Shown in pieces: positions 7,082-31,787 of a stretch of 64,000 bases of DNA. Within the stretch, counting starts at the first letter, position 1, and every line of letters starts with the position of its first letter. Location: assembly GCA_039096225.1 (NCBI GenBank), contig JBBPEB010000014.1, forward strand, positions 1,426,001 through 1,490,000, written 5' to 3'. Position numbers and translations under genes: made by a program. This stretch comes from Blastocystis sp. Blastoise. Lineage: Eukaryota > Protista > Bigyra: Opalinata. The notes under the pieces are model-generated. The model ran no database searches, was not told the DNA's origin, and worked only from the letters and a program-made list of their open reading frames with translations.

Positions 7082-9190
7082 ATGGCTCTATCAAGATATA
7101 TATCTGATTCATTTGGTAATCTTCTATTATCTTCATCAACAACAGTAGATATTATTGATAACATGTATTTATTTCTTCCTATTTCATACAAGAATATAAC
7201 TGTTCCATCTTTTTCAATAAAACAACCAAAACCTGCTGGTATCACTCTTTGTATTGAATCAAATCAAAGTAATGAAACGTCTGATATAACTGATAATTCT
7301 TCATATTATAATCCTATGTCACTTATCAAATCAACTATTAACTGCAATAATAAATTCTTCTGTTTATTAAAAGAATCTATAAATGAATTAGTTTCAAATA
7401 ATGATACAAATGATATTGTTAGAATGAAAGAGAAATGGAAAGATTATGTAACTAATAATACTAGTACTATTATACAGTTGATTTCGTACCTTACTGATGA
7501 TCTTCTTTTCTATGATATTGAATTATATAAATGTTCTTCATTGAAGAGTGTTCTAAGACATAATGGCACTTATAACAAGTTTATATCATATAATATGACG
7601 GATAAGAAATGGTATTGCATAGCTTGTCTCCTATATTCTAATGATCCAGTGATTCTTGGTAATAAATATACATATACTACTGTTACATCTCACATGACTC
7701 TAAATAGTCATAAATCATCATTAAAGTTATTCAAAAAGCTTCTTTCGAATTTAGAGAATAATCAGACGCTGATTACTAACTCAACAAATCACTGTTGTAC
7801 TACTGATAACTTGCTTCTATGGAAATACTTTTTTACAAAATTCTATAATTGTATGTGTGTCTGCTTATCTGATATTCATTCCATTTATGGTCAAACAACT
7901 ATATTATCATCTTCTAGTTGTGGTATGTTTCTTGTTCTATTAAAACTAACTGGAAAGAATGATCCTATCTTCAGACAGTTCTTAGAGGAAAATAAAAGAT
8001 TTTATCAGTCAGTACGATCCATCCAGAGATGGATTACTATTATATCTACAAGTATAATGAATAGTTTAAAGAATGAAGTTGGAAATAAGTTATTTAGTAT
8101 CACAACAGATGGGACAACATCTCAACATCTGGAACAACTAGCTATTACTATCCGTTATGTTGATAGTAGTTATATAATTCATCAACACTTTTTGTATATA
8201 CTAGAGGAAACTTCTCCTTCTGGTATTGTAATTGGAAAATCACTTATGAAGTGTCTAGATCAACTTAATTACAATAAGAATAACTTATGTGGTATATCAT
8301 ATGACAACTGCATATGTAATACGAGCTTAACATCAGGTATCATTGCTGGTTTATCTGTGAATCCTACATCTATTATTGGTTATGGGTGTCGTGTACACCT
8401 TCTTAATCTTGCACTTCTAGACTTACAAAACAATGTTATAGATTCTTCATTATATATAGAAGCAATAAATAATGTGGCATCAAGTTGGTCACGCTGTTCT
8501 AGAATAAGGGTTCTCATTAAAAATAATGGTTATAGTCTTTATACTCTTCCTCAAATTTCCCAAACACGATTTACAGCCAGATATTATTCTTTATATCCTT
8601 ATGTTGTACATCCAAAAAATACTTTATGTAAAGTGTTTCTTCTATACTTCTATTCATTTAACAAAAATAATATTTGCTTCAAAAATTGTGAGAATATGTT
8701 AAAGATGTTAGGAGAAGTTTCATTTCATCTATATATAGAATCCTGGTTCTATATATTACAATTAATGAACGAAGCATCGTCTCAATTACAGTCTGAAACG
8801 TTGACTATTTCTGAAACTATTCAGATCATTAATAGAATATTTGATAAACTCTCCTACCTGTCCTCTGCAAATATGATTAAGAAAATGTACAACAATGCTC
8901 TTGAAAGAAGAGATTATATATATAAGAATATATCTTTGTTGATTCATCGCTTAAACGTATATAAAAATAATACGGAAGATCCATCATGTATTACTTCTAT
9001 TATCCAAGAGATGAATAGTATACCTGAGTATAATAGTAAATTTAATGTTAATCTAGATAATGATGTAGAAACTTTTATGAAAGATAATGATGATTCAGAC
9101 AATAATTCTTCTAATAATATAAATACTACAGACTTAAAGTCCCTGGAAAAAACCGGTCCTCTGGAAAAAACCGGTCCATTTTTTTTTTAA
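7082..9190 (+). CDS. hAT transposase main exon (first two catalytic Asp, CxxH); last residues and stop come from the MITE
   Basis: 702-aa ORF. The terminal KSLEKTGPLEKTGPFFF is read from the MITE left TIR starting at 9137. Confidence 0.8.
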   Translation: MALSRYISDSFGNLLLSSSTTVDIIDNMYLFLPISYKNITVPSFSIKQPKPAGITLCIESNQSNETSDITDNSSYYNPMSLIKSTINCNNKFFCLLKESINELVSNNDTNDIVRMKEKWKDYVTNNTSTIIQLISYLTDDLLFYDIELYKCSSLKSVLRHNGTYNKFISYNMTDKKWYCIACLLYSNDPVILGNKYTYTTVTSHMTLNSHKSSLKLFKKLLSNLENNQTLITNSTNHCCTTDNLLLWKYFFTKFYNCMCVCLSDIHSIYGQTTILSSSSCGMFLVLLKLTGKNDPIFRQFLEENKRFYQSVRSIQRWITIISTSIMNSLKNEVGNKLFSITTDGTTSQHLEQLAITIRYVDSSYIIHQHFLYILEETSPSGIVIGKSLMKCLDQLNYNKNNLCGISYDNCICNTSLTSGIIAGLSVNPTSIIGYGCRVHLLNLALLDLQNNVIDSSLYIEAINNVASSWSRCSRIRVLIKNNGYSLYTLPQISQTRFTARYYSLYPYVVHPKNTLCKVFLLYFYSFNKNNICFKNCENMLKMLGEVSFHLYIESWFYILQLMNEASSQLQSETLTISETIQIINRIFDKLSYLSSANMIKKMYNNALERRDYIYKNISLLIHRLNVYKNNTEDPSCITSIIQEMNSIPEYNSKFNVNLDNDVETFMKDNDDSDNNSSNNINTTDLKSLEKTGPLEKTGPFFF

Positions 9191-9656
9191 TGTTATTTTC
9201 ATGTAAATACGGTTTTTTTTAACCACAAAAACAAAATAACCACGATTTTTCATTCTTTTTTGTTTTATAAACATTTTTGTTTATATAATCATTACTATAT
9301 ATGTCATCCACTTCCCATATCACTTGACAGAATTGTTATGTGGTAATTATCACCAAAATCTGCGATATAATATTATATTTTGACAGTGTAATCTTATTTA
9401 TTCTCGATAAGTCAATTTAAGTCAGGTTGAAGTGACAATCAACTATTATCATGGTATGTGCTGCAAAAGTGATGGAAGGAAATATAGATGACTCGCATAT
9501 TAATGATGTTGCTGATAAAACTGTGTATAAAACAAAAAAAATTAAAAATCGTGGTTATATATTTTTTTGCCGTTAAAAAATTATTATTTACATGAAAATA
9601 ACATTAAAAAAAAATGGACCGGTTTTTTCCAGAGGACCGGTTTTTTCCAGGGACTT
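9137..9656. mobile_element. 520-bp MITE with long TIRs and TA target duplication (Tc1/mariner-type signature)
   Basis: ~70-bp near-perfect TIR AAGTCCCTGGAAAAAACCGGTCCTCTGGAAAAAACCGGTCCATTTT..., extending imperfectly to ~190 bp. TA at 9135-9136 and 9657-9658. Removing the element restores GAC TTA TAT GAT in frame. Confidence 0.92.
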
Positions 9657-9817
9657 TATATGATTCTACTCATCCTAATTCCTTATCTATTAATCAATTT
9701 TCGTTTTCTATATCTGAATCAATTCTTTCTATTCTTAATTATCGAGATGAAATGGAAAAGAAAAATCTTCAAAAGATTTATGAATCCAAAGGTCTTCAAC
9801 AACATCATATAAAAAAG

Positions 9818-9850
<33 letters not shown>

Positions 9851-10486
9851 TTATATATTTATATAGAGTTAAACAAAATATTTTAATTAATCATGATAAT
9901 GATGTTTATATGGCTCCTGTTTCGGATAATACTGGTAATATAGAATTAGAAATGAATAAATGTGTTTCAAACATTAACTGTACTAGTTCACAAGAATATA
10001 TTCAATCGATTATTAAACAAGAAGTTGAACATAAGACAGCCATTTCTTCTTCTCCTATATTATCTCCTTCAAATAATCCAAATATATATTCAGTATCACA
10101 AGATGATATTGAAGTTTTTTTTTCAGTATTAAGCAAATCAACTTCAACCTTAGAAATGAATAATGACTCTTCAATGAATATAAAACAAAAAAGTGATACA
10201 AAAAAAAATAATATTAATTATTCTTCAATACTATCATCTATTAATCACCCTAAAAGAAAAAGAGGTAGACCGAGAAAAGCAATGATAAATACTAATGACA
10301 TAGATTCTTATACTCAAGATACTCGTTCTACGTCTCTAAGCCAAAAACGAATTATTCATAACGAAAATAATAAGCAGAATAATGATTCTTCTATTTCATT
10401 TCAAAACCATGAATCCATGTTTTCTTTAGAAGAGAAAAAAAATATTGTTGAATCAAAACTAGATTCATTAGTCTATACGTATATAT

Positions 10487-11149
10487 ATGTATATTTTATG
10501 TATTATTTTTTGTTTATATAGTATTATATTTGATAATTACAAAAATAATATTTATGGTTTTTCGGCAAGTATAAACCTTATGATTTTGAAAATGAGGCAA
10601 AATATTAATACTAGATTATACAAAGATATTATTCAGGATCTCTCACTTTCTTTCTTCATTACACCTTCCATGATAATTGATTCAAATATAGATACTCAGT
10701 TGCTATATAGTCAGACACTCTATTCTCTTTTCTCATATCGTCTTCCAATCGATTTCATTCCTAAAATTTGTCAAATGACAAAGCATCTACAAAAGACAAT
10801 ATCTGTTCAATCATCTATTAATGATATTATTAAATGTATTCACAATGAATTTCCTATTCACTATTCTATCTATGAAATGGTTATACAAATATGTTTAACA
10901 CTAAGCCCAACTAGTATCAAAAGTGAAACTTGCTTTAGTACATTAAGGAGAATTAAGGGCTGCTTTCAGACTTCTATGAAACCTGAACTTCTTCAAACAT
11001 ATATGGCATGTACGTGTAATCGAGAACTACTTTCTTCTGTAAATAGCTCAGAGGTAGTTGATAAATATGTTGATGGTCTTAGATTACCAATATTAAGTAA
11101 TAATATCTCATCAAAGGTTTTAAGAAGTGAATTATTAAATTGTAAATAA
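10487..11149 (+). CDS. hAT transposase last exon (catalytic Glu and hATC dimerisation domain)
   Basis: SPTSIKSETCFSTLRRIKGCFQTSMKPELL matches the hATC consensus PxTSxxxERxFSxLxxIKxxLRSxM. The real exon starts near 10522 after an AG. Confidence 0.8.
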   Translation: MYILCIIFCLYSIIFDNYKNNIYGFSASINLMILKMRQNINTRLYKDIIQDLSLSFFITPSMIIDSNIDTQLLYSQTLYSLFSYRLPIDFIPKICQMTKHLQKTISVQSSINDIIKCIHNEFPIHYSIYEMVIQICLTLSPTSIKSETCFSTLRRIKGCFQTSMKPELLQTYMACTCNRELLSSVNSSEVVDKYVDGLRLPILSNNISSKVLRSELLNCK

Positions 11150-13712: not shown

Positions 13713-16700
13713 TTAATATCCTTAATTTAGTTCATGTAGCGTACGGTGTCTCACACACTTTCACATTTATTGACTTTGTTATTAACTTTTATAAAATAAA
13801 AATAACATCATAAAATCCGGAACACAATTCTAAAAATGACTGTTAAAGAAATTTTTCGAAAACTCTAAATTTCTGGCTAAAAAATGCAAAAAACCATTTT
13901 CGCACAAAATTTTAACCAAAATTATTGGATTATTTCTATTTTATCCAATATTTTTCATTTTTATAAAAACACTTATTTTTCGTTTTTTATTTTTTATTGT
14001 TTTCTTATTTTTTCTATATCTACTCACATTCTTTATATTTATTTTTATAAAATTGACTTTTATTGACGGGTTAGTCTAATGAATAGTTTTGACGGGTAAA
14101 TTTGTTTATATTAAGAACTTGACAACATATCAATACACACATCACTAACTATAAACTCTAAAAACATTTCATATGCAATGATACTGACCTCAACTACTCT
14201 AAAACGACAATAATTCCTTTAAATAACGACAAAAGACAAACTGATATCCGACACATTCCTTCTTTATAAACTTATTTGAGTTTATTCAAGTTATTTAGAA
14301 TCAATACATGTCATAAGTATATCTTTTAGTTGTTTAAAAAGTTTTAATAAGAAAATATTTGATAATAGAAATTTTGATGTTTTGATAGTATAGTTTGTTA
14401 TTCGTCTTTCTCCTTGAGTTTTGGGTATTTTTTAAAAATAAAAGTATAATTATAATTAAGATAAGCTATTGCAGATACATATTTTTTATTTTATCTAAAT
14501 ATTGAATATTGACTGAGAAACATTCATTTATATGAAAAACATAAAAATGAAAATTTTCAAAAAAGGGTATAGTTTGTTATTGTGATTTCTCAATCAATTC
14601 TTAATAAAATAAAAAAGTTAAAACATATTTAGAAACTAGACATGTCATAGCAGATACATATTTTTCAATTTTTTTAATTAATTGAAAACTCAGGTGACAA
14701 GAGTCAATAGTTGAACTCAATAAAAAATGACTTTCAAAAAATTTTCTTAAAAAGTTTTCATTTGTTTTTTGTTTATATTTTCATCATTAACAATTTTATT
14801 TGACATTTGACTTTATATTTAAAAACTACATACCAAAATAAACATATTTTACAATTTTATTTTGTTTTTAAAAGACTTTAACAACAGATCACCAGACAAT
14901 GTTAACTCAATAAACTCTTAAAACGTTTTAATATGTGTTTAGAACCACTCATAGACACTGTACGTGACTTATTTGAAAAAGTTAAGACAACATGTTGAAC
15001 TGATACAGACAATGTTTGCTTTAAAAAGTTAGTTATGAGTCTTTATGAGTTGTATATGTCATAAATAAGCTTTAAATAAATAAATATGCTTTTATTAGTC
15101 TTTAATTAGTGAAATAAATCGTTTAAAAAAAGAAAACATTTTTGATACTATAGTTTATTTTGACAATTTCTCCATCAATATTAATTTTTAAAAAATAAAT
15201 AAAACTTATATATAAACTAGACAACCTATAGCTTATAAATTTATAAAAATATTATCAAAATATAAAATAACTTTTGAGAAAAAAAATTATATATGCAAAA
15301 CATAAAAATTATTTTTTTTGAAAAAAGGGTATAGTTTATCGTTTTAATTTCTCAGTCAATATTTTATTATTTATTATAATTTTAACAAATAAATATAGAG
15401 AATAAAATATATTAACGATATAAATTTTAACATTTAAAATTAATTAAGAAATGAGTTCAGTAGAGTCAATAGTATAACATGTTAAAAAACTGAAAATTGA
15501 AAAATCGTTTTTCTAAAAATTTTCCGAAAGTTGACAAATCAAATTCATATTTGACAAATAATTTTTATATATTTGTAAACTAGACCTTATATGTATTGCA
15601 TTTCTCAAAAAATTAGTCAAAATTGGGTTAGACGAGTGAATATATATATAAACATGTTGACTCATAATTTTGAAAAAAGTAGTTAAATATGTCCTAAACC
15701 ACATATCAAAGCAATTCTATAAATATTATCACTTTATAATGAGTTTAAAGGGTAAAATAATTTTGAATTGTCTGTTTGACTGTCTTAAGTGAAGAGATTC
15801 AATACACTTTTTATAAAAATGAGTATTAGAGTGTTTAATGTTTATAATAATAAAAGAATTGTTTGAAATAAAGGTGGTTGTGTGTTTGACCAAAATGTTA
15901 AAATGAGTCTATTTTTCTAAAATGGTTACAATAAGTATATATTGAGTGTTTTATGAGTGTTTCATATTAAAATCTACAATAAATAAACATTTTGAGTTGT
16001 TCAAAAATTTGATTCTTTAGAATTACAATAGTTATGTCAAGAGATTCAAGTCACTTTTTATAATAATAATAAATAGACTTATTATAGAATATAAAATATT
16101 AAAAATTAGTTTAATTAAACATGGTTGACTGTTTGATAGGAGTGTTAAAATGGGTAAAAAGATTTTAATTGTTTCTAAAACAGTACAATACGTTTTTATG
16201 TCACTAAATACAAAATTATTATTGTTTAAAGAATGTTTTTTGTCTTTCAAAAGAACTCATTTTTTTGTAATTGTGACTTAAAACAAAAGAGATTCAAGTT
16301 ATTTTTTACAAATTAAAATAATAAATCAAATATATATGTATATGAATATAAAATTAGTTAAAATAAAAGTGAGTATATGTATTTAAAAACGTTACAGTCT
16401 TTTAGAGTTTTTTTATGATAACTTATTTGTTTTAGAAGCTATATTGTATGTATAATAGGTAAAGTTTCCAAAGTATTTAAATCTATTTAGTTATGAAATG
16501 AAATGTAATTTTTGTTTTATATTTTAGTTTTTATTTTTTATTTCTAGAATGATTTTGATAACACTATAAAAATTGAATTAAACTTGAATTAATTAATTTT
16601 AAATAATGAAAAGATAATTTCTCTATAAATATTCTCTTTTACTTAAAACGAATAGATTCTATTAATGATAAATATTAAAATAAGACTCTAATTTTTTTGT

Positions 16701-17836
16701 TTATTATATAAAGTAATAAATATCTTTTAATTATTAAGAGTACTTTTGTATTAATAATTCAAACTAAAATAAGTATAATAAAAGAAAAATTATAATATTT
16801 ATCAAATAATATCAAGATATGATTACTATTTATATAATTAAACATTTATTAATTGAGAAAAGCTGTATAATAAAATTTCTAAAATATTTATATAATAGTA
16901 TATATAAAAGGAAAGGATAAAATATAAAAAAACAAATAGATATCAAAATTATAATATTTTAAAAATAAAACAAAACAATATATGAAAAGAATATATAATG
17001 TTTTTTTTAGACAAGAGAATAAGCTATTTCTCACAATAATAATTATATAGACTAATTCAAATAAAACATAAATATTTAAAGGTAGGGTATAAGTGATAAT
17101 AATATGTTTTAAAAGAAAAAGTATTTTATAATCATATTGATATTATTTAAAATACTAAATATTTATAAAACTAAATGAATTGATAAAATACATAGAAAGT
17201 TATAAATGAAATAACAAAGAAAAGTGAATTAATATTGAAAACTAAAAACTAAATAGAAATAGAAATAGAAATAGAAATAGAAATAGAAATAGAAATAGAA
17301 ATAGAAATAGAAATAGAAATAGAAATAGAAATAGAAATAGAAATAGAAATAGAAATAGAAATAGAAATAGAAATAGAAATAGAAATAGAAATAGAAATAG
17401 AAATAGAAATAGAAATAGAAATAGAAATAAGATCAAAAATAAAACACAAGAGTTAATTAATTATCATTGATAAACAATAAATATATATAATCAATAATAA
17501 AAATGGCTAAAAAGAATATTAAAAAAAAAAAAGGAAATAATACTCAAAAACATATAGAATGTTAAGTAAGAATTATCAATATGTATGAATTAAATTATTT
17601 AAAATACTAAATTGAAAATTAAGATTAGAAGATAACAATTAAAAGCAATTGAAATAATATTTTATAAAATATGAAATAGTTTTAATCCTAAAAAAAAAAA
17701 ATAAAAACAGAAATGAATAACAAAAACATAAGAATAAATATTCATTTTTTAAAATTCAATGTAAGATATAACAATTGAGAGATAATAATTATCTAAACTC
17801 AAGCGTAGGCTGGCGTAGCCAGTCGTGAAACGCTTG
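13713..17836 (+). mobile_element. Non-autonomous Helitron-like element, copy 1 (4124 bp)
   Basis: 5' TTAATATCCTTAATTTAGTTCATGTAGCGTACGG. 3' hairpin GGCTGGC-GTA-GCCAGTC 12 nt before terminal CTTG. Flanks GAAAA^TATAT, no TSD, no TIR. Homologous to three other copies in the window. Confidence 0.85.
17252..17428. repeat. (TAGAAA)n hexamer array, ~29 units, within copy 1
   Basis: Direct reading. Confidence 0.95.
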
Positions 17837-20725
17837 TATATTATAAAAGAATAAATGAAAAAACATTATACAATAAATATCAAAAATGATAACTAAATGG
17901 CAACATATAATAAGTACTGGAAGAATATGATATATTCAATGTGTAATAAACACAAATGAACAAATAACTAAAAGTAGCAGGCAGGTATATATCATTATAA
18001 TGATATAATTATTAGATGAGAATTGTAAAGGTTTATATGAAATAGAATCTAATCATTTAAAATCATATATAAAAGTAAATAATAGCTGAAGAATAAAAAC
18101 ATTTAATATAAAGAAAGATGAATATTTTTGACTAAAAAGAGGAAGAAGAAATTACATAATGATAAATATTAGTTTTTGATAATATAAAAAGAAATAAGGA
18201 AGTCAAAAATTAAAAGAAATAAAGAATATCAATAATAATAATTGCCTAATAAAAATTTGTGATGAGTAATTAATGTATTTATGCATTAATAAGAATCATC
18301 AATTGAAGAAAGAAACGAATGTTATTGAGAAAAACATATTGTAGCCAAAGATATGTGATAATTAATAATAAAAATTCTAACAATTAATTGTATGAATAAT
18401 CTATATCAAAGAGGAGTATTATAATCTTAAATATTCACAAATGAAGATCAAAAGGAAAGAGAGGAATTGTCAAATAAATAACAGAATTGTATTTAAAAGA
18501 ACTATAAGAGAGAACCAATATTTATGATAAAGATTTAATTATACAATGAAAATAATTAAAATCAAAGAGTAAAGAATTAGTCAATAATTGGAATACATAT
18601 GATAAATAACTAGAAGAATTGAAGGAAGAAAGGAGATACATGAGATTGATACAAAAAAATTGAAAGATGATAGTAACCTTCTCATATATATAGGGAATAA
18701 ATAGTTTATTAAACATAATATAAGAAGAAATAGTGCATAAAAAGAGAAACGAAGTAGTAAAGAAAACTTGAATATCAAATCATTTCTTCTTCATATAAAA
18801 ATTTATGAGAAATAGAGAAAACCATATACAATAATAGTTTAACAATTTTGAAATCAGAAAAAGATCAAAATAATAAACCTATAAATAATAAAGCATTGTT
18901 TATATAAATATCAAGTATATATTATATAAATATTAAGAAAACATATATACGAATAAAAATGGGGCTTAAAAGACAATTCTCTTTAGTAAAAGACATAAAA
19001 ATAAGAAATACTGACTATAAAAAATTTATAGATTAAAACAATAGAATAATAAAGAATTCTAAAAAATAATAATAAGGAATTCTAAAAGAAAAATAGACAT
19101 AAGGACAAAATATGGAGATGTGTAAAAATAATATATTATAATATGATGATTAAGATATGTAAATTGTATAGAAAAGTATAAAAATATATAGAAAATAAGA
19201 TAATGAATGACTTGAAAGAGAAATGATCACTAATATATACTCAAACAGAAATCAAAATTGTGAGTTATTCCATTAAATATGACAAAGGGTCTACACTTAT
19301 TGGCTAGATGATTAACTATAAAGAAATGAGTAGAAGAAAATGAAATGAATTCATTAATACTTTATTACTTATAAAATATAAAATAATCATTGTATATGAT
19401 GTATATCAGACTGCATTCACTAAAAACAAGCAAACATTCAAATGAATCGCATAGTAAAAGATGTTTTACACTTTTAAAAAATGAACATAATAGTGATTTT
19501 TGTTCTATTTTCAGTAAGAAAAAAGGAATTTTTATGAAGAATATATAATGAGATAGATCTTGTGGTTTTAACTTGTTCTTGTAAATAGAATACAATAAAA
19601 TATCATGGGTATCATGAAGATACACTAAGTGTAATAAGATTTCTAATACTTTTATGTATTATAGATTCATTTTTCTAAAACAATTTTTAAATGCATTAAA
19701 TATGTTCGATAGAAGTTGTATAATGAAAATAAGCTGAATTACTCAATATCATTAATAAAAAGAAAGAAACATTTTTAACATTCCCAAGTGAACTCTTAAG
19801 ATATTGTTAAATTTGTTTATACTCTATCTTGCATGTCTAAGTATAGTATTGCTTGCTTTTGATATGACAAAAATTGATAAAAAGTATAAAAGAATTACAT
19901 GACAAGACTTTTTATATATGGTTTTTAAGCTATCAGTGATTTTTATCTTTATATAATTTATGTGTTATTAATTAATGAATATCGAAACTCAGTTAATAAT
20001 AAATTAGACTTTAAAACTTTGTTGAAAAGAGTTTCTATATATTTACTGAACAATAAATCTAATGTTTAATATATAACAGAGAATTATTATTATATTTAAT
20101 TTCTTTTAATTGATCACTATTACATTTTTATGTTATTCTTAGTTATTTATTATTATAGAAAAGATAAATAAATATAATAATTTTTGAAGTTCTTAAAATC
20201 ATTACTAACTAGAGTTTTTTTACCAATTGTTAGAAGAATGATTATAATAAGATGGTTGTTAGTATTCCGAAAATTATTTTTTACCACAATATCAGATACT
20301 CAAGTCATTTAATTGAATACAAGCGTTTCACGACTGGCTACGCCAGCCTACGCTTGAGTTTAGATAATTATTATCTCTCAATTGTTATATCTTACATTGA
20401 ATTTTAAAAAATGAATATTTATTCTTATGTTTTTGTTATTCATTTCTGTTTTTATTTTTTTTTTTAGGATTAAAACTATTTCATATTTTATAAAATATTA
20501 TTTCAATTGCTTTTAATTGTTATCTTCTAATCTTAATTTTCAATTTAGTATTTTAAATAATTTAATTCATACATATTGATAATTCTTACTTAACATTCTA
20601 TATGTTTTTGAGTATTATTTCCTTTTTTTTTTTAATATTCTTTTTAGCCATTTTTATTATTGATTATATATATTTATTGTTTATCAATGATAATTAATTA
20701 ACTCTTGTGTTTTATTTTTGATCTT

Positions 20726-20903
20726 ATTTCTATTTCTATTTCTATTTCTATTTCTATTTCTATTTCTATTTCTATTTCTATTTCTATTTCTATTTCTATT
20801 TCTATTTCTATTTCTATTTCTATTTCTATTTCTATTTCTATTTCTATTTCTATTTCTATTTCTATTTCTATTTCTATTTCTATTTCTATTTCTATTTCTA
20901 TTT
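20726..20903. repeat. (TTTCTA)n hexamer array, ~29 units, within copy 2
   Basis: Direct reading. Reverse complement of the copy 1 array. Confidence 0.95.
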
Positions 20904-23900
20904 AGTTTTTAGTTTTCAATATTAATTCACTTTTCTTTGTTATTTCATTTATAACTTTCTATGTATTTTATCAATTCATTTAGTTTTATAAATATTTAGT
21001 ATTTTAAATAATATCAATATGATTATAAAATACTTTTTCTTTTAAAACATATTATTATCACTTATACCCTACCTTTAAATATTTATGTTTTATTTGAATT
21101 AGTCTATATAATTATTATTGTGAGAAATAGCTTATTCTCTTGTCTAAAAAAAACATTATATATTCTTTTCATATATTGTTTTGTTTTATTTTTAAAATAT
21201 TATAATTTTGATATCTATTTGTTTTTTTATATTTTATCCTTTCCTTTTATATATACTATTATATAAATATTTTAGAAATTTTATTATACAGCTTTTCTCA
21301 ATTAATAAATGTTTAATTATATAAATAGTAATCATATCTTGATATTATTTGATAAATATTATAATTTTTCTTTTATTATACTTATTTTAGTTTGAATTAT
21401 TAATACAAAAGTACTCTTAATAATTAAAAGATATTTATTACTTTATATAATAAACAAAAAAATTAGAGTCTTATTTTAATATTTATCATTAATAGAATCT
21501 ATTCGTTTTAAGTAAAAGAGAATATTTATAGAGAAATTATCTTTTCATTATTTAAAATTAATTAATTCAAGTTTAATTCAATTTTTATAGTGTTATCAAA
21601 ATCATTCTAGAAATAAAAAATAAAAACTAAAATATAAAACAAAAATTACATTTCATTTCATAACTAAATAGATTTAAATACTTTGGAAACTTTACCTATT
21701 ATACATACAATATAGCTTCTAAAACAAATAAGTTATCATAAAAAAACTCTAAAAGACTGTAACGTTTTTAAATACATATACTCACTTTTATTTTAACTAA
21801 TTTTATATTCATATACATATATATTTGATTTATTATTTTAATTTGTAAAAAATAACTTGAATCTCTTTTGTTTTAAGTCACAATTACAAAAAATGAGTTC
21901 TTTTGAAAGACAAAAAACATTCTTTAAACAATAATAATTTTGTATTTAGTGACATAAAAACGTATTGTACTGTTTTAGAAACAATTAAAATCTTTTTACC
22001 CATTTTAACACTCCTATCAAACAGTCAACCATGTTTAATTAAACTAATTTTTAATATTTTATATTCTATAATAAGTCTATTTATTATTATTATAAAAAGT
22101 GACTTGAATCTCTTGACATAACTATTGTAATTCTAAAGAATCAAATTTTTGAACAACTCAAAATGTTTATTTATTGTAGATTTTAATATGAAACACTCAT
22201 AAAACACTCAATATATACTTATTGTAACCATTTTAGAAAAATAGACTCATTTTAACATTTTGGTCAAACACACAACCACCTTTATTTCAAACAATTCTTT
22301 TATTATTATAAACATTAAACACTCTAATACTCATTTTTATAAAAAGTGTATTGAATCTCTTCACTTAAGACAGTCAAACAGACAATTCAAAATTATTTTA
22401 CCCTTTAAACTCATTATAAAGTGATAATATTTATAGAATTGCTTTGATATGTGGTTTAGGACATATTTAACTACTTTTTTCAAAATTATGAGTCAACATG
22501 TGCATATACTCATTCACTCGTCTAACCCAATTTTGACTAATTTTTTGAGAAATGCAATACATATAAGGTCTAGTTTACAAATATATAAAAATTATTTGTC
22601 AAATATGAATTTGATTTGTCAACTTTCGGAAAATTTTTAGAAAAACGATTTTTCAATTTTCAGTTTTTTAACATGTTATACTATTGACTCTACTGAACTC
22701 ATTTCTTAATTAATTTTAAATGTTAAAATTTATATCGTTAATATATTTTATTCTCTATATTTATTTGTTAAAATTATAATAAATAATAAAATATTGACTG
22801 AGAAATTAAAACGATAAACTATACCCTTTTTTCAAAAAAAATAATTTTTATGTTTTGCATATATAATTTTTTTTCTCAAAAGTTATTTTATATTTTGATA
22901 ATATTTTTATAAATTTATAAGCTATAGGTTGTCTAGTTTATATATAAGTTTTATTTATTTTTTAAAAATTAATATTGATGGAGAAATTGTCAAAATAAAC
23001 TATAGTATCAAAAATGTTTTCTTTTTTTAAACGATTTATTTCACTAATTAAAGACTAATAAAAGCATATTTATTTATTTAAAGCTTATTTATGACATATA
23101 CAACTCATAAAGACTCATAACTAACTTTTTAAAGCAAACATTGTCTGTATCAGTTCAACATGTTGTCTTAACTTTTTCAAATAAGTCACGTACAGTGTCT
23201 ATGAGTGGTTCTAAACACATATTAAAACGTTTTAAGAGTTTATTGAGTTAACATTGTCTGGTGATCTGTTGTTAAAGTCTTTTAAAAACAAAATAAAATT
23301 GTAAAATATGTTTATTTTGGTATGTAGTTTTTAAATATAAAGTCAAATGTCAAATAAAATTGTTAATGATGAAAATATAAACAAAAAACAAATGAAAACT
23401 TTTTAAGAAAATTTTTTGAAAGTCATTTTTTATTGAGTTCAACTATTGACTCTTGTCACCTGAGTTTTCAATTAATTAAAAAAATTGAAAAATATGTATC
23501 TGCTATGACATGTCTAGTTTCTAAATATGTTTTAACTTTTTTATTTTATTAAGAATTGATTGAGAAATCACAATAACAAACTATACCCTTTTTTGAAAAT
23601 TTTCATTTTTATGTTTTTCATATAAATGAATGTTTCTCAGTCAATATTCAATATTTAGATAAAATAAAAAATATGTATCTGCAATAGCTTATCTTAATTA
23701 TAATTATACTTTTATTTTTAAAAAATACCCAAAACTCAAGGAGAAAGACGAATAACAAACTATACTATCAAAACATCAAAATTTCTATTATCAAATATTT
23801 TCTTATTAAAACTTTTTAAACAACTAAAAGATATACTTATGACATGTATTGATTCTAAATAACTTGAATAAACTCAAATAAGTTTATAAAGAAGGAATGT

Positions 23901-24111
23901 GTCGGATATCAGTTTGTCTTTTGTCGTTATTTAAAGGAATTATTGTCGTTTTAGAGTAGTTGAGGTCAGTATCATTGCATATGAAATGTTTTTAGAGTTT
24001 ATAGTTAGTGATGTGTATATTGATATGTTGTCAAGTTCTTAATATAAACAAATTTACCCGTCAAAACTATTCATTAGACTAACCCGTCAATAAAAGTCAA
24101 TTTTATAAAAA

Positions 24112-27100
24112 TTAATATCCTTAATTTAGTTCATGTAGCGTACGGTGTCTCACACACTTTCACTATTATTGACTTTGTTATTAACTTTTATAAAATAAAA
24201 ATTACATCATAAAATCCAGAACACAATTCTGAAAATGACTGTTAAAGAAATTTTTCAAAAACTCTAAATTTCTGGCTAAAAAACGGAAAAAACCATTTTC
24301 GCACAAAATTTTAACCAAAATTATTGGATTATTTTTATTTTATCCAATATTTTTCATTTTAATAAAAACACTTATTTTTCGTTTTTCATTTTTTATTGTT
24401 TTCTTATTTTTCCTATATCACTTCACATACTCTATATTTATTTTTATAAAATTGACTTTTATTGACGGGTTAGTCTTATAAATAGTTTTGACGGGTGAAT
24501 TAGTTTATATTTACAACTTGACAACATATCAATACACACATTACTAACTTTAAACTCTAAAATGGTTTCAGTTGTTATGATACTGACCTCAACTACTCTG
24601 AAACAACAATAATTCCTTTAAATAACAACAAAAGTCAAACTGATATCCGACACATTCCTTCTTTATAAACTTATTTGAGCTTTAATATATTTATTTAACT
24701 CTGTATCCGTCATAAATATGTTTTATATTTTAATAATATGTTTTAATAAGAAAATATTTGATAATAGAAATTTTGATGTTTTGATAGTATAGTTTGTTAT
24801 TCGTCTTTCTCCTTGAGTTTTGGGTATTTTTTAAAAATAAAAGTATAATTATAATTAAGATAAGCTATTGCAGATACATATTTTTTATTTTATCTAAATA
24901 TTTAATATTGACTGAGAAACATTCATTTATATGAAAAACATAAAAATGAAAATTTTCAAAAAAGGGTATAGTTTGTTATTGTGATTTCTCAATCAATTCT
25001 TAATAAAATAAAAAAGTTAGAACATATTTAGAAACTAGACATGTCATAGCAGATACATGTTTTTCATTTTTTTAATTAATTGAAAACTCAGGTGACAAGA
25101 GTCAATAGTTGAACTCAATAAAAAATGACTTTCAAAAAATTTTCTTAAAAAGTTTTCATTTGTTTTTTGTTTATATTTTCATCATTAACAATTTTATTTG
25201 ACATTTGACTTTATATTTAAAAACTACATATCAAAATAAACATATTTTACAATTTTATTTTGTTTTTAAAAGACTTTGACAACAGATCACCAGACAATGT
25301 TAACTCAATAAACTCTTAAAACGTTTTAATACGTGTTTAGAACCACTCATAGACACTGTACGTGACTTATTTGAAAAAGTTAAGACAACATGTTGAACTG
25401 ATACAGACAATGTTTGTCTTAAAAAGTTAGTTATGAGTCTTTATGAGTTGTATATGTCATAAATAAGCTTAAAATAAATAAATTTGTTTTTAATTGTCTT
25501 TAATTAGTGAAATAAGTCGTTTAAAAAGAAGAAAGCATTTTGGATACTATAGTTTATTTTGACAATTTCTCCATCAATATTAATTTAAATAAAATAAATA
25601 AATCTTATTTATAAACTAGACAACCTATAGTTTATATATTTATAAAAATATTATCAAAATATAAAATAACTTTTGAGAAAAAAAATTATATATGCAAAAC
25701 ATAAAAAAATTAATTTTTGAAAAAAGGGTATACTTTATAACATTAATTTCTCAGTCAATATTTAATTATTTTATATAATTTTAACAAATAAATATAGAGA
25801 ATAACACATATTAATAATAAAAATTTTAATATTTGAAATTAATAAAAAAATGAGTTCAGTAGAGTCAATAGTATAACATGTTAAAAAACTGAAAATTGAA
25901 AAATCATTTTTCTAAAAATTTTCTGAAAGTTGACAAATCAAATTCATATTTGACAATTAATTTTTACATATTTGTAAACTAGACCTTATATGTATTGCAT
26001 TTCTCAAAAAATTAGTCAAAAATAAGTTAGACGAGTGTATGATATATATAAACATGTTGACTCATAATTTTGAAAAAAGTAGTTAAATATGTCCTAAACC
26101 ACATATCAAAGCAATTCTATAAATATTATCACTTTATAATGAGTTTAAAGGGTAAAATAATTTTGAATTGTCTGTTTGACTGTCTTAAGTGAAGAGATTC
26201 AATACACTTTTTATAAAAATGAGTATTAGAGTGTTTAATGTTTATAATAATAAAAGAATTGTTTGAAATAAAGGTGGTTATGTGTTTGACCAAAATGTTA
26301 AAATGAGTCTATTTTTCTAAAATGGTTACAATAAGTATATATTGAGTGTTTTTGGAGTGTTTCATATTAAAATCTACAATAAATAAACATTTTAAGTTGT
26401 TCAAAAAATTATTTTTTTAGAATTACAATAGTTAAGTCAAGAGATTCAAGTCACTTTTTATAATAATAATAAATAGACTTATTATAGAATATAAAATATT
26501 AAAAATTAGTTTAATTAAACATGGTTGACTGTTTGATAGGAGTGTTAAAATGGGTAAAAAGATTTTAATTGTTTCTAAAACTGTATAATACGTTTTTATG
26601 TCACTAAATACAAAATTATTATTGTTTAAAGAATGTTTTTTGTCTTTCAAAAGAACTCATTTTTTGTAATTGTGACTTTAAACAAAAGAGATTCAAGTTA
26701 TTTTTTACAAATTAAAATAATAAATTAAATATATATGTATATTAATATAAAATTCGTTTTAATAAAAGTGGATATGTGTATTTAAAAACGTTAAAATCTT
26801 TTAGATTTTTTTAAAAATAACTTATTTGTTTTATAAACTATATTTTATGTATAATAGGTAAAGTTTCCAAAGTATTTAAATCTATTTAGTTATGAAATGA
26901 AATGTAATTTTTGTTTTATATTTTAGATTTTATTTCTTATTTCTAGAATGATTTTGATAACACTATAAAAATTGAATTAAATTTGAATTAATTAATTTTA
27001 AATAATGAAAAGATAATTTCTCTATAAATATTCTCTTTTACTTAAAACGAATAGATTCTATTAATGATAAATATTAAAATAAGACTCTAATTTTTTTGTT

Positions 27101-28439
27101 TATTATATAAAGTAATAAATATCTTTTAATTATTAAGAGTACTTTTGTATTAATAATTCAAACTAAAATAAGTATAATAAAAGAAAAATTATAATATTTA
27201 TCAAATAATATCAAGATATGATTACTATTTATATAATTAAACATTTATTAATTGAGAAAAGCTGTATAATAAAATTTCTAAAATATTTATATAATAGTAT
27301 ATATAAAAGGAAAGGATAAAATATAAAAAAACAAATAGATATCAAAATTATAATATTTTAAAAAATAAAACAAAACAATATATGAAAAGAATAAAAAAGA
27401 ATATATAATATTTTTTTAGACAAGAGAATAAGCTATTTCTCACAATAATAATTATATAGACTAATTCAAATAAAACATAAATATTTAAAGGTAGGGTATA
27501 AGTGATAATAATATGTTTTAAAAGAAAAAGTATTTTATAATCATATTGATATTATTTAAAATACTAAATATTTATAAAACTAAATGAATTGATAAAATAC
27601 ATAGAAAGTTATAAATGAAATAACAAAGAAAAGTGAATTAATATTGAAAACTAAAAACTAAATAGAAATAGAAATAGAAATAGAAATAGAAATAGAAATA
27701 GAAATAGAAATAGAAATAGAAATAGAAATAGAAATAGAAATAGAAATAGAAATAGAAATAGAAATAGAAATAGAAATAGAAATAGAAATAGAAATAGAAA
27801 TAGAAATAGAAATAGAAATAGAAATAGAAATAGAAATAGAAATAGAAATAGAAATAGAAATAGAAATAGAAATAGAAATAGAAATAGAAATAGAAATAGA
27901 AATAGAAATAGAAATAGAAATAGAAATAGAAATAGAAATAGAAATAGAAATAAAAATAGAAATAGAAATAGAAATAGAAATAGAAATAGAAATAGAAATA
28001 GAAATAGAAATAGAAATAGAAATAGAAATAGAAATAAGATCAAAAATAAAACACAAGAGTTAATTAATTATCATTGATAAACAATAAATATATATAATCA
28101 ATAATAAAAATGGCTAAAAAGAATATTAAAAAAAAAAAGGAAATAATACTCAAAAACATATAGAATGTTAAGTAAGAATTATCAATATGTATGAATTAAA
28201 TTATTTAAAATACTAAATTGAAAATTAAGATTAGAAGATAACAATTAAAAGCAATTGAAATAATATTTTATAAAATATGAAATAGTTTTAATCCTAAAAA
28301 AAAATAAAAACAGAAATGAATAACAAAAACATAAGAATAAATATTCATTTTTTAAAATTCAATGTAAGATATAACAATTGAGAGATAATAATTATCTAAA
28401 CTCAAGCGTAGGCTGGCGTAGCCAGTCGTGAAACGCTTG
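24112..28439 (+). mobile_element. Helitron-like copy 3 (4328 bp), nested in copy 2 in opposite orientation
   Basis: Same TTAATATCC and hairpin-CTTG termini. Target AAAAA^TAAAT with no duplication. Longer (TAGAAA)n array. Confidence 0.88.
27661..28035. repeat. (TAGAAA)n hexamer array, ~62 units, within copy 3
   Basis: Direct reading. One variant unit (TAAAAA) near 27951. Confidence 0.95.
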
Positions 28440-28768
28440 TAAATATAAAGAATGTGAGTAGATATAGAAAAAATAAGAAAACAATAAAAAATAAAAAACG
28501 AAAAATAAGTGTTTTTATAAAAATGAAAAATATTGGATAAAATAGAAATAATCCAATAATTTTGGTTAAAATTTTGTGCGAAAATGGTTTTTTGCATTTT
28601 TTAGCCAGAAATTTAGAGTTTTCGAAAAATTTCTTTAACAGTCATTTTTAGAATTGTGTTCCGGATTTTATGATGTTATTTTTATTTTATAAAAGTTAAT
28701 AACAAAGTCAATAAATGTGAAAGTGTGTGAGACACCGTACGCTACATGAACTAAATTAAGGATATTAA

Positions 28769-31700
28769 CAAGCGTTTCACGACTGGCTACGCCAGCCTAC
28801 GCTTGAATCTAAATAAACATAAAAAAATAATTTGTAAAAAGACTATCTTTTCATTATATAAAAATTATTTATTTCAAATTTTGTTTTGTTTTATTAATAT
28901 TATCAATAATGGTTTCATATTTTATTAATATTATCAATAATTGTTTCATAAAAAGAAAATTAAAAAATAAAAATTAACTATATATAAAATAAAGATTACA
29001 TTCTATTTCATTAGTAAATATATTTAAATACTTAAAAAACTATAGTATTGTTTATAAAATAGAGTTTACACAACAAATAAGTTATCATAAAAAAACTCTA
29101 AAAAACTATAACATTTTGAAATACATATACTTACTTTTATTAAAACGAATTTTATATTAATATACATATATATTTGATTTATTATTTTAATTTATAAAAA
29201 GTAACTTGAATTTCATTTGTTTAAAGTCACAATTACAAAAAAATGAGTTCTTTTGAAAGATAAAAAACATTCTTTAAACAATAATATTTTTGTATTTAGT
29301 GACAAAAAAACGTATTATACTGTTTTAGAAACAATTAAAATCTTTTTACCCATTTTAACATTCCTATCAAACAGTCAACCACATTTAATTAAATTAATTT
29401 TTAATATTTTATATTCTATAATAGGTCTATTTATTATTTTTATAAAAAGTGACTTGAATCTCTTGACTTAACTATTGTAATTCTAAAAAAATATTTTTTT
29501 GAACAACTTAAATTATTTATTTATTGTAAATTTTAATATAAAACACTCATAAAACACTCTATACATACTTGTTACAACCATTTTAAAAAATTGACTCATT
29601 TTAACATTTTGGTCAAACACACAACCACCTTTATTTCAAACAATTCTTTTATTATTATAAACATTAAACACTCTAATACTCATTTTTATAAAAAGTGTAT
29701 TGAATCTCTTGACTTAAGACAGTCAAACAGACAATTCAAAATTATTTTACCCTTTAAATTCATTATAGAGTGATAATATTTTCAGAATTGTCCTAATATG
29801 TGATTTAGGACACATTTAACTACTTTTTACAAAATTATGAGCCAACATGTGCATATACTCATTCACTCGTCTAACCCAATTTTGACCATTTTTTTGAGAA
29901 ATGCAATACATATAAGGTTTAGTTTTCAAAAATGTAAAAATTAATTGTCAAATATGAATTTGATTTGTCAACTTTCGGAAAATTTTTAGAAAAATGATTT
30001 TTCAATTTTCAGTTTTTTAACATGTTATACTATTGACTCTATTGAACTCATTTTTTAATTAATCTCAAATATTAAATATTATATTATTAATACGTTTTAT
30101 TCTCTATATTTATTTGTTATAATTATATAAAATAATTAAATATTGACTGAGAAATTAATGTTATAAAGTATACCCTTTTTCCAAAAATTAATTTTTTTAT
30201 GTTTTGCATATATAATTTTTTTCTCAAAAGTTATTTTATATTTAGATATTAATTTTATAAATATATAAACTATATGTTATCTAGTTTATAGATAAGTTTT
30301 ATTTATTTTTTAAAAATAAATATTGATGGAGAAATTGTCAAAACAAACTATAGTATCAAAAATGTTTTCTTTTTTTAAACGATTTATTTCACTAATTAAA
30401 GACAATTAAAAACAAATTTATTTATTTAAAGCTTATTTATAACATTTTATACTCATAGTGACTCATAACTAACTTTTTAAAGCAAACATTGTCAGTATCA
30501 GTTCAACATGTTGTCTTAACTTTTGTAAATGAGTGATATATAGTGTCCACGAATGATTCTAAACACGAATTGAAACGTTTTAATAGTTTATTGAGTTAAC
30601 ATTGTCTGGTGATCTGTTGTCAAAGTCCTTTAAAAACAAAATAAAATTCTAAAATATGTTTATTTTGATATGTAGTTTTTGAATATAAAGTCTAATATCA
30701 AATATATTTATTATTGATGAAATTATGAACAAAAAACAAATAAAAAATTTTTGAGAAAAATTTCGAACGTCATTTTTTTATTGAGTTCAACTATAGTCTC
30801 CTGTGACTTCATTTTTTAATATTTTGAAAAAATGACAAAAATGGATGACATTTAGGTCGTCCTATATCTAAATAAGCTTTAACTTTATTATTTTATAAAA
30901 TATTGACTGAGATCTAGTGATCACAAAATATACCATTTTTTGAAAATTTTCATTTTTATGTTTTTAATTAAAATTAATATATCTCGGTCAATATTAGATA
31001 TTTAATAAAAATATAAAAAACGGATGACATTTAGGTTGTCTAATATCTAAATATGTTTTTACTTGTATTATATGTTGAATATTGACTGAGATCTGATGAT
31101 AACAAAATTGGGTATCAAAGAAGAAAAATTTTTAAAAGCAAATATTTCTCTTTTAAAAAGTATATGACAAATATAAAACATATTCATGACGGATATAGAG
31201 TTAAATAAATACAAAACAGTTCAATTAAGTTTATAAAGAAGGAATGTGTCGGATATCAGTTTGTCTTTTGTCGTTATTTAAAGAAATTATTGCTATTTCA
31301 GAGTAGTCAAAGTCATTTAAATTACGAATGTAATCATTTTAGAGTTTAAAGTTAGTAATGTGTGTATTGATATGTTGTCAAGTCATAAATATAAACAAAT
31401 TTACCCGTCAAAACTATTTATAAGACCAACCCGTCAATAAAAGTCAATTTTATAAAAATAAATATAAAGTATGTGAAGAGATATAGAAAAAATAAGAAAA
31501 CAATAAAAAATGAAAAACAAAAAATAAATGTTTTTATAAAAATGAAGAATATTGGATAAAATAAAAATAATCCAATAATTTTGGTTAAAATTTTGTGCGA
31601 AAATGGTTTTTTGCGTTTTTTAGCCAGAAATTTAGAGTTTTTGAAAAATTTCTTTAACAGTCATTTTTAGAATTGTATTCCGGTTTTTATGATGTTATTT

Positions 31701-31787
31701 TTATTTGATAAAAGTTAATAACAAAGTCAATAATAGTGAAAGTGTGTGAGACACCGTACGCTACATGAACTAAATTAAGGATATTAA
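28769..31787 (-). mobile_element. Helitron-like copy 4, shorter diverged subfamily (3019 bp)
   Basis: Same termini, lacks the (TAGAAA)n-containing segment. Its CTTG end abuts the TT start of copy 2. Outer flank on the minus strand is TATAA^TT. Confidence 0.85.

Follow-up and report, generated by a model that had tools for sequence, protein, structure and literature searches.

What moves a repeat that encodes no protein of its own? This question is raised by a 64,000-nt stretch of the genome of Blastocystis sp. Blastoise (contig JBBPEB010000014.1, positions 1,426,001 to 1,490,000; hereafter the window), in which four non-coding repeats with a common 5′ end lie at positions 13713-31787. A sequence-only reading of the window had described them as rolling-circle elements resembling Helitrons, with TT and CTTG ends. 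We found that the four repeats are very probably non-autonomous Helitrons of the Helitron1 (HLE1) type, mobilised in trans by the Rep-helicase protein (RepHel) of ~1630 aa that is encoded by elements of 13.3-13.65 kb elsewhere in the genome (family C). The family has shared termini, integrates exactly between A and T, has a 3′ fold-back that is conserved in structure, and forms nested and tandem insertions.

Exactly four occurrences of the 44-nt 5′ terminus were counted in the window (13713 and 24112 on the plus strand, and 28768 and 31787 on the minus strand), where the chance expectation is 0, and none of the four copies has an open reading frame (ORF) longer than 72 aa; the description as four non-coding copies with a common 5′ end was therefore correct. 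Copy A (13713-17836, plus strand) is a non-autonomous element of 4124 bp in the ~4-kb size class, flanked by GAAAA and TATAT. On that same strand, it begins with an unstructured terminus of 18 nt, TTAATATCCTTAATTTAG (13713-13730), which is common to all non-autonomous copies and to the 13.3-kb autonomous elements, and it carries an internal (AAATAG)n microsatellite (~17250-17430) whose length differs from copy to copy and which is absent from the ~3-kb class. It closes with a 3′ terminal fold-back (17800-17836) made of an outer stem, CAAGCGT/ACGCTTG, which includes the terminal CTTG, and of the inner hairpin GGCTGGC-gta-GCCAGTC. Copy B, on the minus strand, totals 4121 bp and is interrupted by copy C, so that its 3′ portion lies at 20320-24111 (3792 bp) and its 5′ portion at 28440-28768 (329 bp, 100% complementary to 13713-14041). 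Copy C itself (24112-28439, plus strand, 4328 bp) is nested in copy B, and copy D (28769-31787, minus strand, 3019 bp) abuts the first T of copy B with its 3′ CTTG, which gives a head-to-tail junction CTTG|TTAATATCC at 28768/28769. Copies A and B are 99.8% identical, and copies A and C are 95.7% identical, with differences mostly in microsatellite length. The four had been taken for full-length copies of one family; all four are present, but copy D falls into the shorter class of ~3.0 kb and is 87.6% identical to copy A over the first 2831 bp. The 3′ end of all four consists of the inner hairpin given above, followed by GTGAAACG and then by CTTG.

Three insertion targets had been reconstructed from the window, GAAAA^TATAT, AAAAA^TAAAT and TATAA^TATTC. 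The sequences are as claimed, and the second is proven by an empty site, since copy A has ATAAAAA^TAAATAT intact whereas copy B reads ATAAAAA, then copy C, then TAAATAT; copy C integrated between A and T with no base duplicated or lost. The third target, however, is that of the D and B tandem as one unit. A second, independent empty site (GAAAA-TTCAG at 122|123 of locus L086, compared with a 3021-bp copy at C20:31414-34434) also shows zero target site duplication (TSD). The 7-nt overlap that the repeat finder gave at the nested site was rejected as a TSD, as it arises from a chance extension that includes a mismatch, the junction itself being exact. In addition, when the first 30 nt of the element were compared with its last 200 nt, the best inverted match was 9/12, which was equalled by 200 of 200 shuffles, and the earlier statement that the family has neither terminal inverted repeats (TIRs) nor TSDs is thus upheld.

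All 27 distinct flanks that were read have A at position -1, and T stands at +1 in each of 33 cases. Genome-wide, 69 of the 72 listed 5′ ends are preceded by A, the exceptions being two tandem junctions and one T; the A^T target proposed from the window agrees with these counts. The T^T target that is the rule for Helitron2 (HLE2) elements was not found, as A stands at -1 in all non-tandem cases but one. A shift of the boundary by one T is possible and changes neither the target nor the other end features; the 5′ start would then read TA, which is still not TC, and, as had been pointed out, neither placement gives a T^T target.

The genome searched comprises 33.3 Mb in 34 contigs with ~21% G+C, and it contains ~82 5′ ends and 96 3′ ends of the family. 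The first 18 nt occur ~82 times, a 5′ 29-mer gave 46 matches (45 exact), and the 3′ 29-mer of the non-autonomous type gave 83 matches (78 exact). When copies were delimited by pairing 5′ and 3′ ends on the same strand, two size classes were obtained, with ~22 copies of 2.96-3.02 kb and ~30 copies of 3.99-4.54 kb, while further end pairs span longer intervals and represent nested or composite structures. A 5′ partner is missing within 16 kb for ~23 of the 3′ ends, suggesting that these copies are 5′-truncated. A mini-element of 592 bp with both family termini (C20:74852-75443) lies head-to-tail with another copy, and the junction between them (C20:74851/74852) is a second exact CTTG|TTAATATCC tandem junction in the genome. 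Each part of the sequence-only inference that could be put to the test was upheld, with two qualifications that are given below.

These counts bear on the idea that the repeats are not rolling-circle elements at all, and instead are Crypton/DIRS-like tyrosine-recombinase elements, IS200/IS605-like elements or a segmental duplication. The lack of TSDs and TIRs occurs in those classes too, and the four window copies are clustered. However, the copies are dispersed (more than 80), with unrelated flanks and limits that are exact to the single base, and in 13 cases a RepHel ORF lies between the termini at constant spacing. Since no ORF in the window copies exceeds 72 aa, they also contain no recombinase or reverse-transcriptase ORF, and this explanation is effectively refuted.

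HLE1 elements are defined by a 5′-TC, a 3′ hairpin with CTRR, and insertion between A and T (PMC11417382). In the present family, all ~82 5′ ends start with TTAATATCC rather than with TC, and the 3′ ends are CTTG in 95 of 96 cases and CCTG in the remaining one, rather than CTRR. The 17-nt hairpin near the 3′ end had been placed 12 nt before CTTG; the hairpin exists, but it ends 8 nt before CTTG, and 12 nt is its distance from the last base of the element. The non-autonomous 3′ end folds with a dG of -10.7 kcal/mol (z -3.7; 0 of 200 shuffles as good) and the autonomous 3′ end of family C with a dG of -14.7 kcal/mol (z -5.1). As for the other terminus, no structure and no 5′ hairpin were found in the 5′ 60 nt (fold z 0.05). 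The last 7 nt, ACGCTTG, pair with CAAGCGT immediately 5′ of the hairpin. This pairing sets family C apart from the co-resident Helitron families A and B, in which no pairing involves the terminal CTAG. All copies have an identical outer stem, which therefore provides no covariation evidence for its importance. The TT and CTTG ends are a family-specific variant of the TC/CTRR consensus, which is uncommon and not new.

A search of the genome with the Rep profile (Helitron_like_N, PF14214) gave 51 matches, and a search with PIF1 gave 55, most of them in open frames of 1476-1677 aa. A single in-frame TGA is present in four of the 51 Rep-domain matches, and the remaining matches have no stop. At least three families (A, B and C) were distinguished among the Rep matches on the basis of domain score, frame length and DNA similarity. 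In family C, the 13 Rep matches score up to 194.6 bits; their open frames measure 1176-1677 aa, eight of them 1629-1677 aa, and PIF1 matches follow downstream. The family-C sequence that was read consists of the 3′ 1.07 kb and a 2.5-kb upstream piece, and the 5′ end was placed by pattern search. In two family-C copies the sequence is 100% identical as far as CTCAAGCGTA-GGCCTGC-gtag-GCAGGCC-GTGAAACGCTTG and differs beyond it, with T as the first base of each flank. Compared with the window copies, the 10 nt before the hairpin (CTCAAGCGTA) and the last 12 nt (GTGAAACGCTTG) are identical and are followed by T in both, while the inner stem differs by two compensatory pair changes (C-G to T-A, and T-A to G-C) and one G-T wobble. 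It is the structure of the 3′ hairpin, rather than its sequence, that is kept.

The 3′ 30-mer of the autonomous type occurs 13 times, and 12 of these occurrences belong to family-C copies, 3714-3725 bp downstream of the point where the Rep domain begins; the remaining family-C copy is split by an insertion of ~20 kb. At the other end, longer patterns (a 29-mer and an internal 24-mer) found non-autonomous copies only, and a mismatch search with the first 20 nt found a second 5′ type, in which TTAATATCCTTAATTTAG is followed by CA; the autonomous 5′ end diverges from the non-autonomous one after nucleotide 18. This 5′ end is present in six family-C copies, 5.8-6.0 kb upstream of the stretch homologous to L086, and gives six complete family-C elements of 13,286-13,650 bp (for example C16:794569-807854), five of them with A at -1. 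Family C shares these 18 nt at the 5′ end and the CTTG at the 3′ end, and corresponds to the RepHel partner that had been predicted to lie elsewhere. Near-identical copies indicate that the family has been recently active, as had been proposed; copies A and B are the near-identical pair in the window, and between family-C copies identity is 100% over 1069 and 1689 bp. The partner frames are mostly open at full length.

We also considered whether the non-autonomous copies are deletion derivatives of family C, and this was rejected, as BLAST against the family-C pieces read gave homology at the termini only. Upstream of the main RepHel frame, L086:1-2123 (C16:800400-802522) has open frames of 141 aa (open at the left edge) and 339 aa, for which Pfam gave no match, and a short-period repeat at ~484-690. 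Family A likewise has a 388-aa frame upstream, and the RepHel gene may have extra 5′ exons.

Several points weigh against family C as an HLE1-type mobiliser of the window copies. One complete autonomous family-C copy (C15:1274260; region C15:1274257-1274279) has T at -1 and is the sole non-tandem exception among the 72 5′ ends. What autonomous and non-autonomous elements have in common is limited to 18 nt at the 5′ end and ~43 nt at the 3′ end, the latter 88% identical, as is usual among Helitrons; trans-mobilisation of the non-coding copies by family C is inferred. The family-C Rep domain is known by its profile score (194.6 bits, with no stops). On C-terminal similarity, family C is a probable member of the HLE1 clade.

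The co-resident families provide a second candidate for the source of the transposase, namely cross-mobilisation of the non-autonomous copies by the canonical family A or B and not by C. Family A has frames of 1622-1644 aa in an element of ~7.2 kb whose 3′ end is GCATCGGC-gaa-GCCGATGC, then CACCCG, then CTAG|T. Family B has frames of 1559-1571 aa, and its 3′ end, placed at the point where the alignment of ten copies breaks off, consists of a long GC hairpin and then TTACCCTAG|T. Both families end in the canonical hairpin-CTAG, and their proteins contain the Helitron_like_N, PIF1 and Pif1_2B domains (Pfam); family A matches the Helraiser transposase (7LCC) with an E of 1.9e-268. The two families are numerous, their frames are mostly open at full length, and they often adjoin copies of the CTTG family, as at loci L081, L082 and L083, all of which would fit their acting on these copies. 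However, their 3′ ends have different hairpins followed by an unpaired CTAG, BLAST found no terminal similarity between families A or B and the CTTG family, and both termini are common to family C only. Cross-mobilisation is therefore improbable, and family C is the preferred partner.

Two observations concern the places where these families adjoin. At L081:1247-4094 (minus strand), ~640 bp downstream of a family-B autonomous element, lies a diverged relative of the non-autonomous family that is 84% identical to copy A over 2.9 kb and whose first ~1.2 kb is apparently gone. At L084:1502-1534, ~435 bp downstream of the end of a family-C element, there is a perfect 33-nt copy of the family-A 3′ hairpin, which is probably a truncated family-A element adjoining family C.

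A further alternative is that the family belongs to Helitron2/Helentron (HLE2) and that the window copies are non-autonomous derivatives like HINEs. HLE2 elements are also rolling-circle RepHel elements, derivatives of the HINE/DINE-1 kind may carry internal tandem repeats, and the TT at the 5′ end recalls the proto-Helentron, whose 5′ end is TT (PMC11417382). The (AAATAG)n microsatellite, on which the sequence-only reading had based its comparison with HINEs, is real, but the comparison rests on the microsatellite alone and is superficial. Moreover, HLE2 elements insert into T^T, have asymmetric TIRs of 12-16 nt, frequently have a 5′ hairpin and carry the marker domain DUF6570 (HELIANO paper, PMC11417382), whereas here the target is A^T, and no asymmetric TIRs and no 5′ hairpin were found. 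Neither DUF6570 nor an AP-endonuclease was found by Pfam in the family A or B proteins or in the family-C pieces read, which do not include the first 5.8 kb of that element or the 3.9 kb of its core from Rep to helicase, ~9.7 kb in all. The C-terminal 277 aa of family C match Helraiser (7LCC), an HLE1 protein, with an E of 1e-56. An HLE2 origin is thus even less credible than cross-mobilisation, and the A^T target, the single 3′ hairpin, the lack of TIRs and the Helraiser match together argue for Helitron1/HLE1.

The same C-terminus is 57% identical to family A and 46% identical to family B. The claim of a distinct lineage therefore holds at the family level only, given the 57% helicase identity to a co-resident CTAG family and the Helraiser match; the family is probably a Helitron1-type family with non-consensus TT/CTTG ends rather than a new branch. 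Like the HLE1 elements Helibat and Helraiser, it has a RepHel, an A^T target, no TSD or TIR, one GC-rich 3′ hairpin ~8-12 nt from the end, numerous non-autonomous copies whose likeness to the autonomous element is confined to the termini, head-to-tail arrays and nested insertions. In contrast to them, it has TT instead of TC at the 5′ end, CTTG instead of CTRR at the 3′ end, and a terminal 7 nt that pairs upstream of the hairpin.

An existing family with the same kind of ends, which the sequence-only reading had named as grounds for refutation, is in part on record. HELPO2 of Pleurotus ostreatus has AT specificity, a subterminal hairpin, a single-ORF RepHel and a CTTG 3′ end replacing CTRR (Castanera et al. 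2014, PMC4289320). By description, and not by terminal sequence, the A^T target, hairpin, RepHel and CTTG end are common to both. HELPO2 elements measure 3.9-10 kb and come from a basidiomycete genome of ~50% GC, with a 5′ end of T[C/G] and no intact non-autonomous copies reported (PMC4289320), so that the two differ in host group, genome GC and 5′ end, and the present family has intact non-autonomous copies. As a CTTG 3′ end with A^T targeting has already been published for HELPO2, the novelty of these ends is modest.

By analogy with Helraiser, transposition of the family could proceed as follows. At the 5′ end, the HUH-Rep domain would nick A|TT on the top strand, and the Pif1-type helicase would peel the strand off in the 5′ to 3′ direction. 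The 3′ hairpin and fold-back would signal termination, with cleavage after CTTG, and the ends would join into a circle with a CTTG|TTAATATCC junction, which would then integrate at an AT dinucleotide. Where the A of the host flank meets the first T of a resident copy, an AT site is created, which allows a new copy to land exactly at the 5′ end of the resident one. A tandem junction would arise when a new copy enters the A|T made in this way, and the D-B junction is consistent with the A^T target rule.

The bacterial element IS91 has a CTTG/GTTC target tetranucleotide adjoining one end. It resembles the present family in HUH-Rep rolling-circle transposition without TSDs, and its tetranucleotide resembles the proposed CTTG|T nick site. 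IS91 differs in being prokaryotic, in lacking a fused helicase and in the architecture of its ends, and the likeness of the tetranucleotides may be coincidence.

We tentatively suggest, at somewhat less than even odds, that the sister families C and A represent a natural switch of Rep cleavage and termination specificity that co-evolved with the transposase, family A using an unpaired CTAG|T and family C using CTTG|T inside a 7-bp terminal stem. If this is true, the protein determinants of Helitron end recognition could be mapped, since all three families, A, B and C, seem to be active at present within one small genome. It is rare for a Helitron family to be known from intact autonomous copies as well as from very young non-autonomous ones, and one genome with at least three Helitron families that have different 3′ ends is a convenient natural system for studying the choice of termination site by Rep. 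Finders that require TC...CTRR termini would miss ~95 elements in this genome. The general picture of Helitrons is unchanged.

Elsewhere in the genome, the 13.4-kb interval C28:19821-33208 has a 5′ end of the autonomous type and closes with a hairpin of the non-autonomous type, and contains no Rep match; a large derivative without coding capacity is one possibility, and a composite is another. In the window, the inverted copies A and B (13713-24111) enclose a unique core of 2483 bp (17837-20319) that is outside the element and has no match among the other loci read. The outer flanks of copies A and B differ, which points to separate insertions and not to one duplicated block. No tRNA-like cloverleaf was found in window positions 12000-33000. 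The neighbourhood of the four copies is transposon-rich. At window positions 7082-11149 on the plus strand there are ORFs of 702, 203 and 220 aa, and the first of these shows weak similarity to DUF4371 (E 3e-4), suggestive of a hAT-like transposase.

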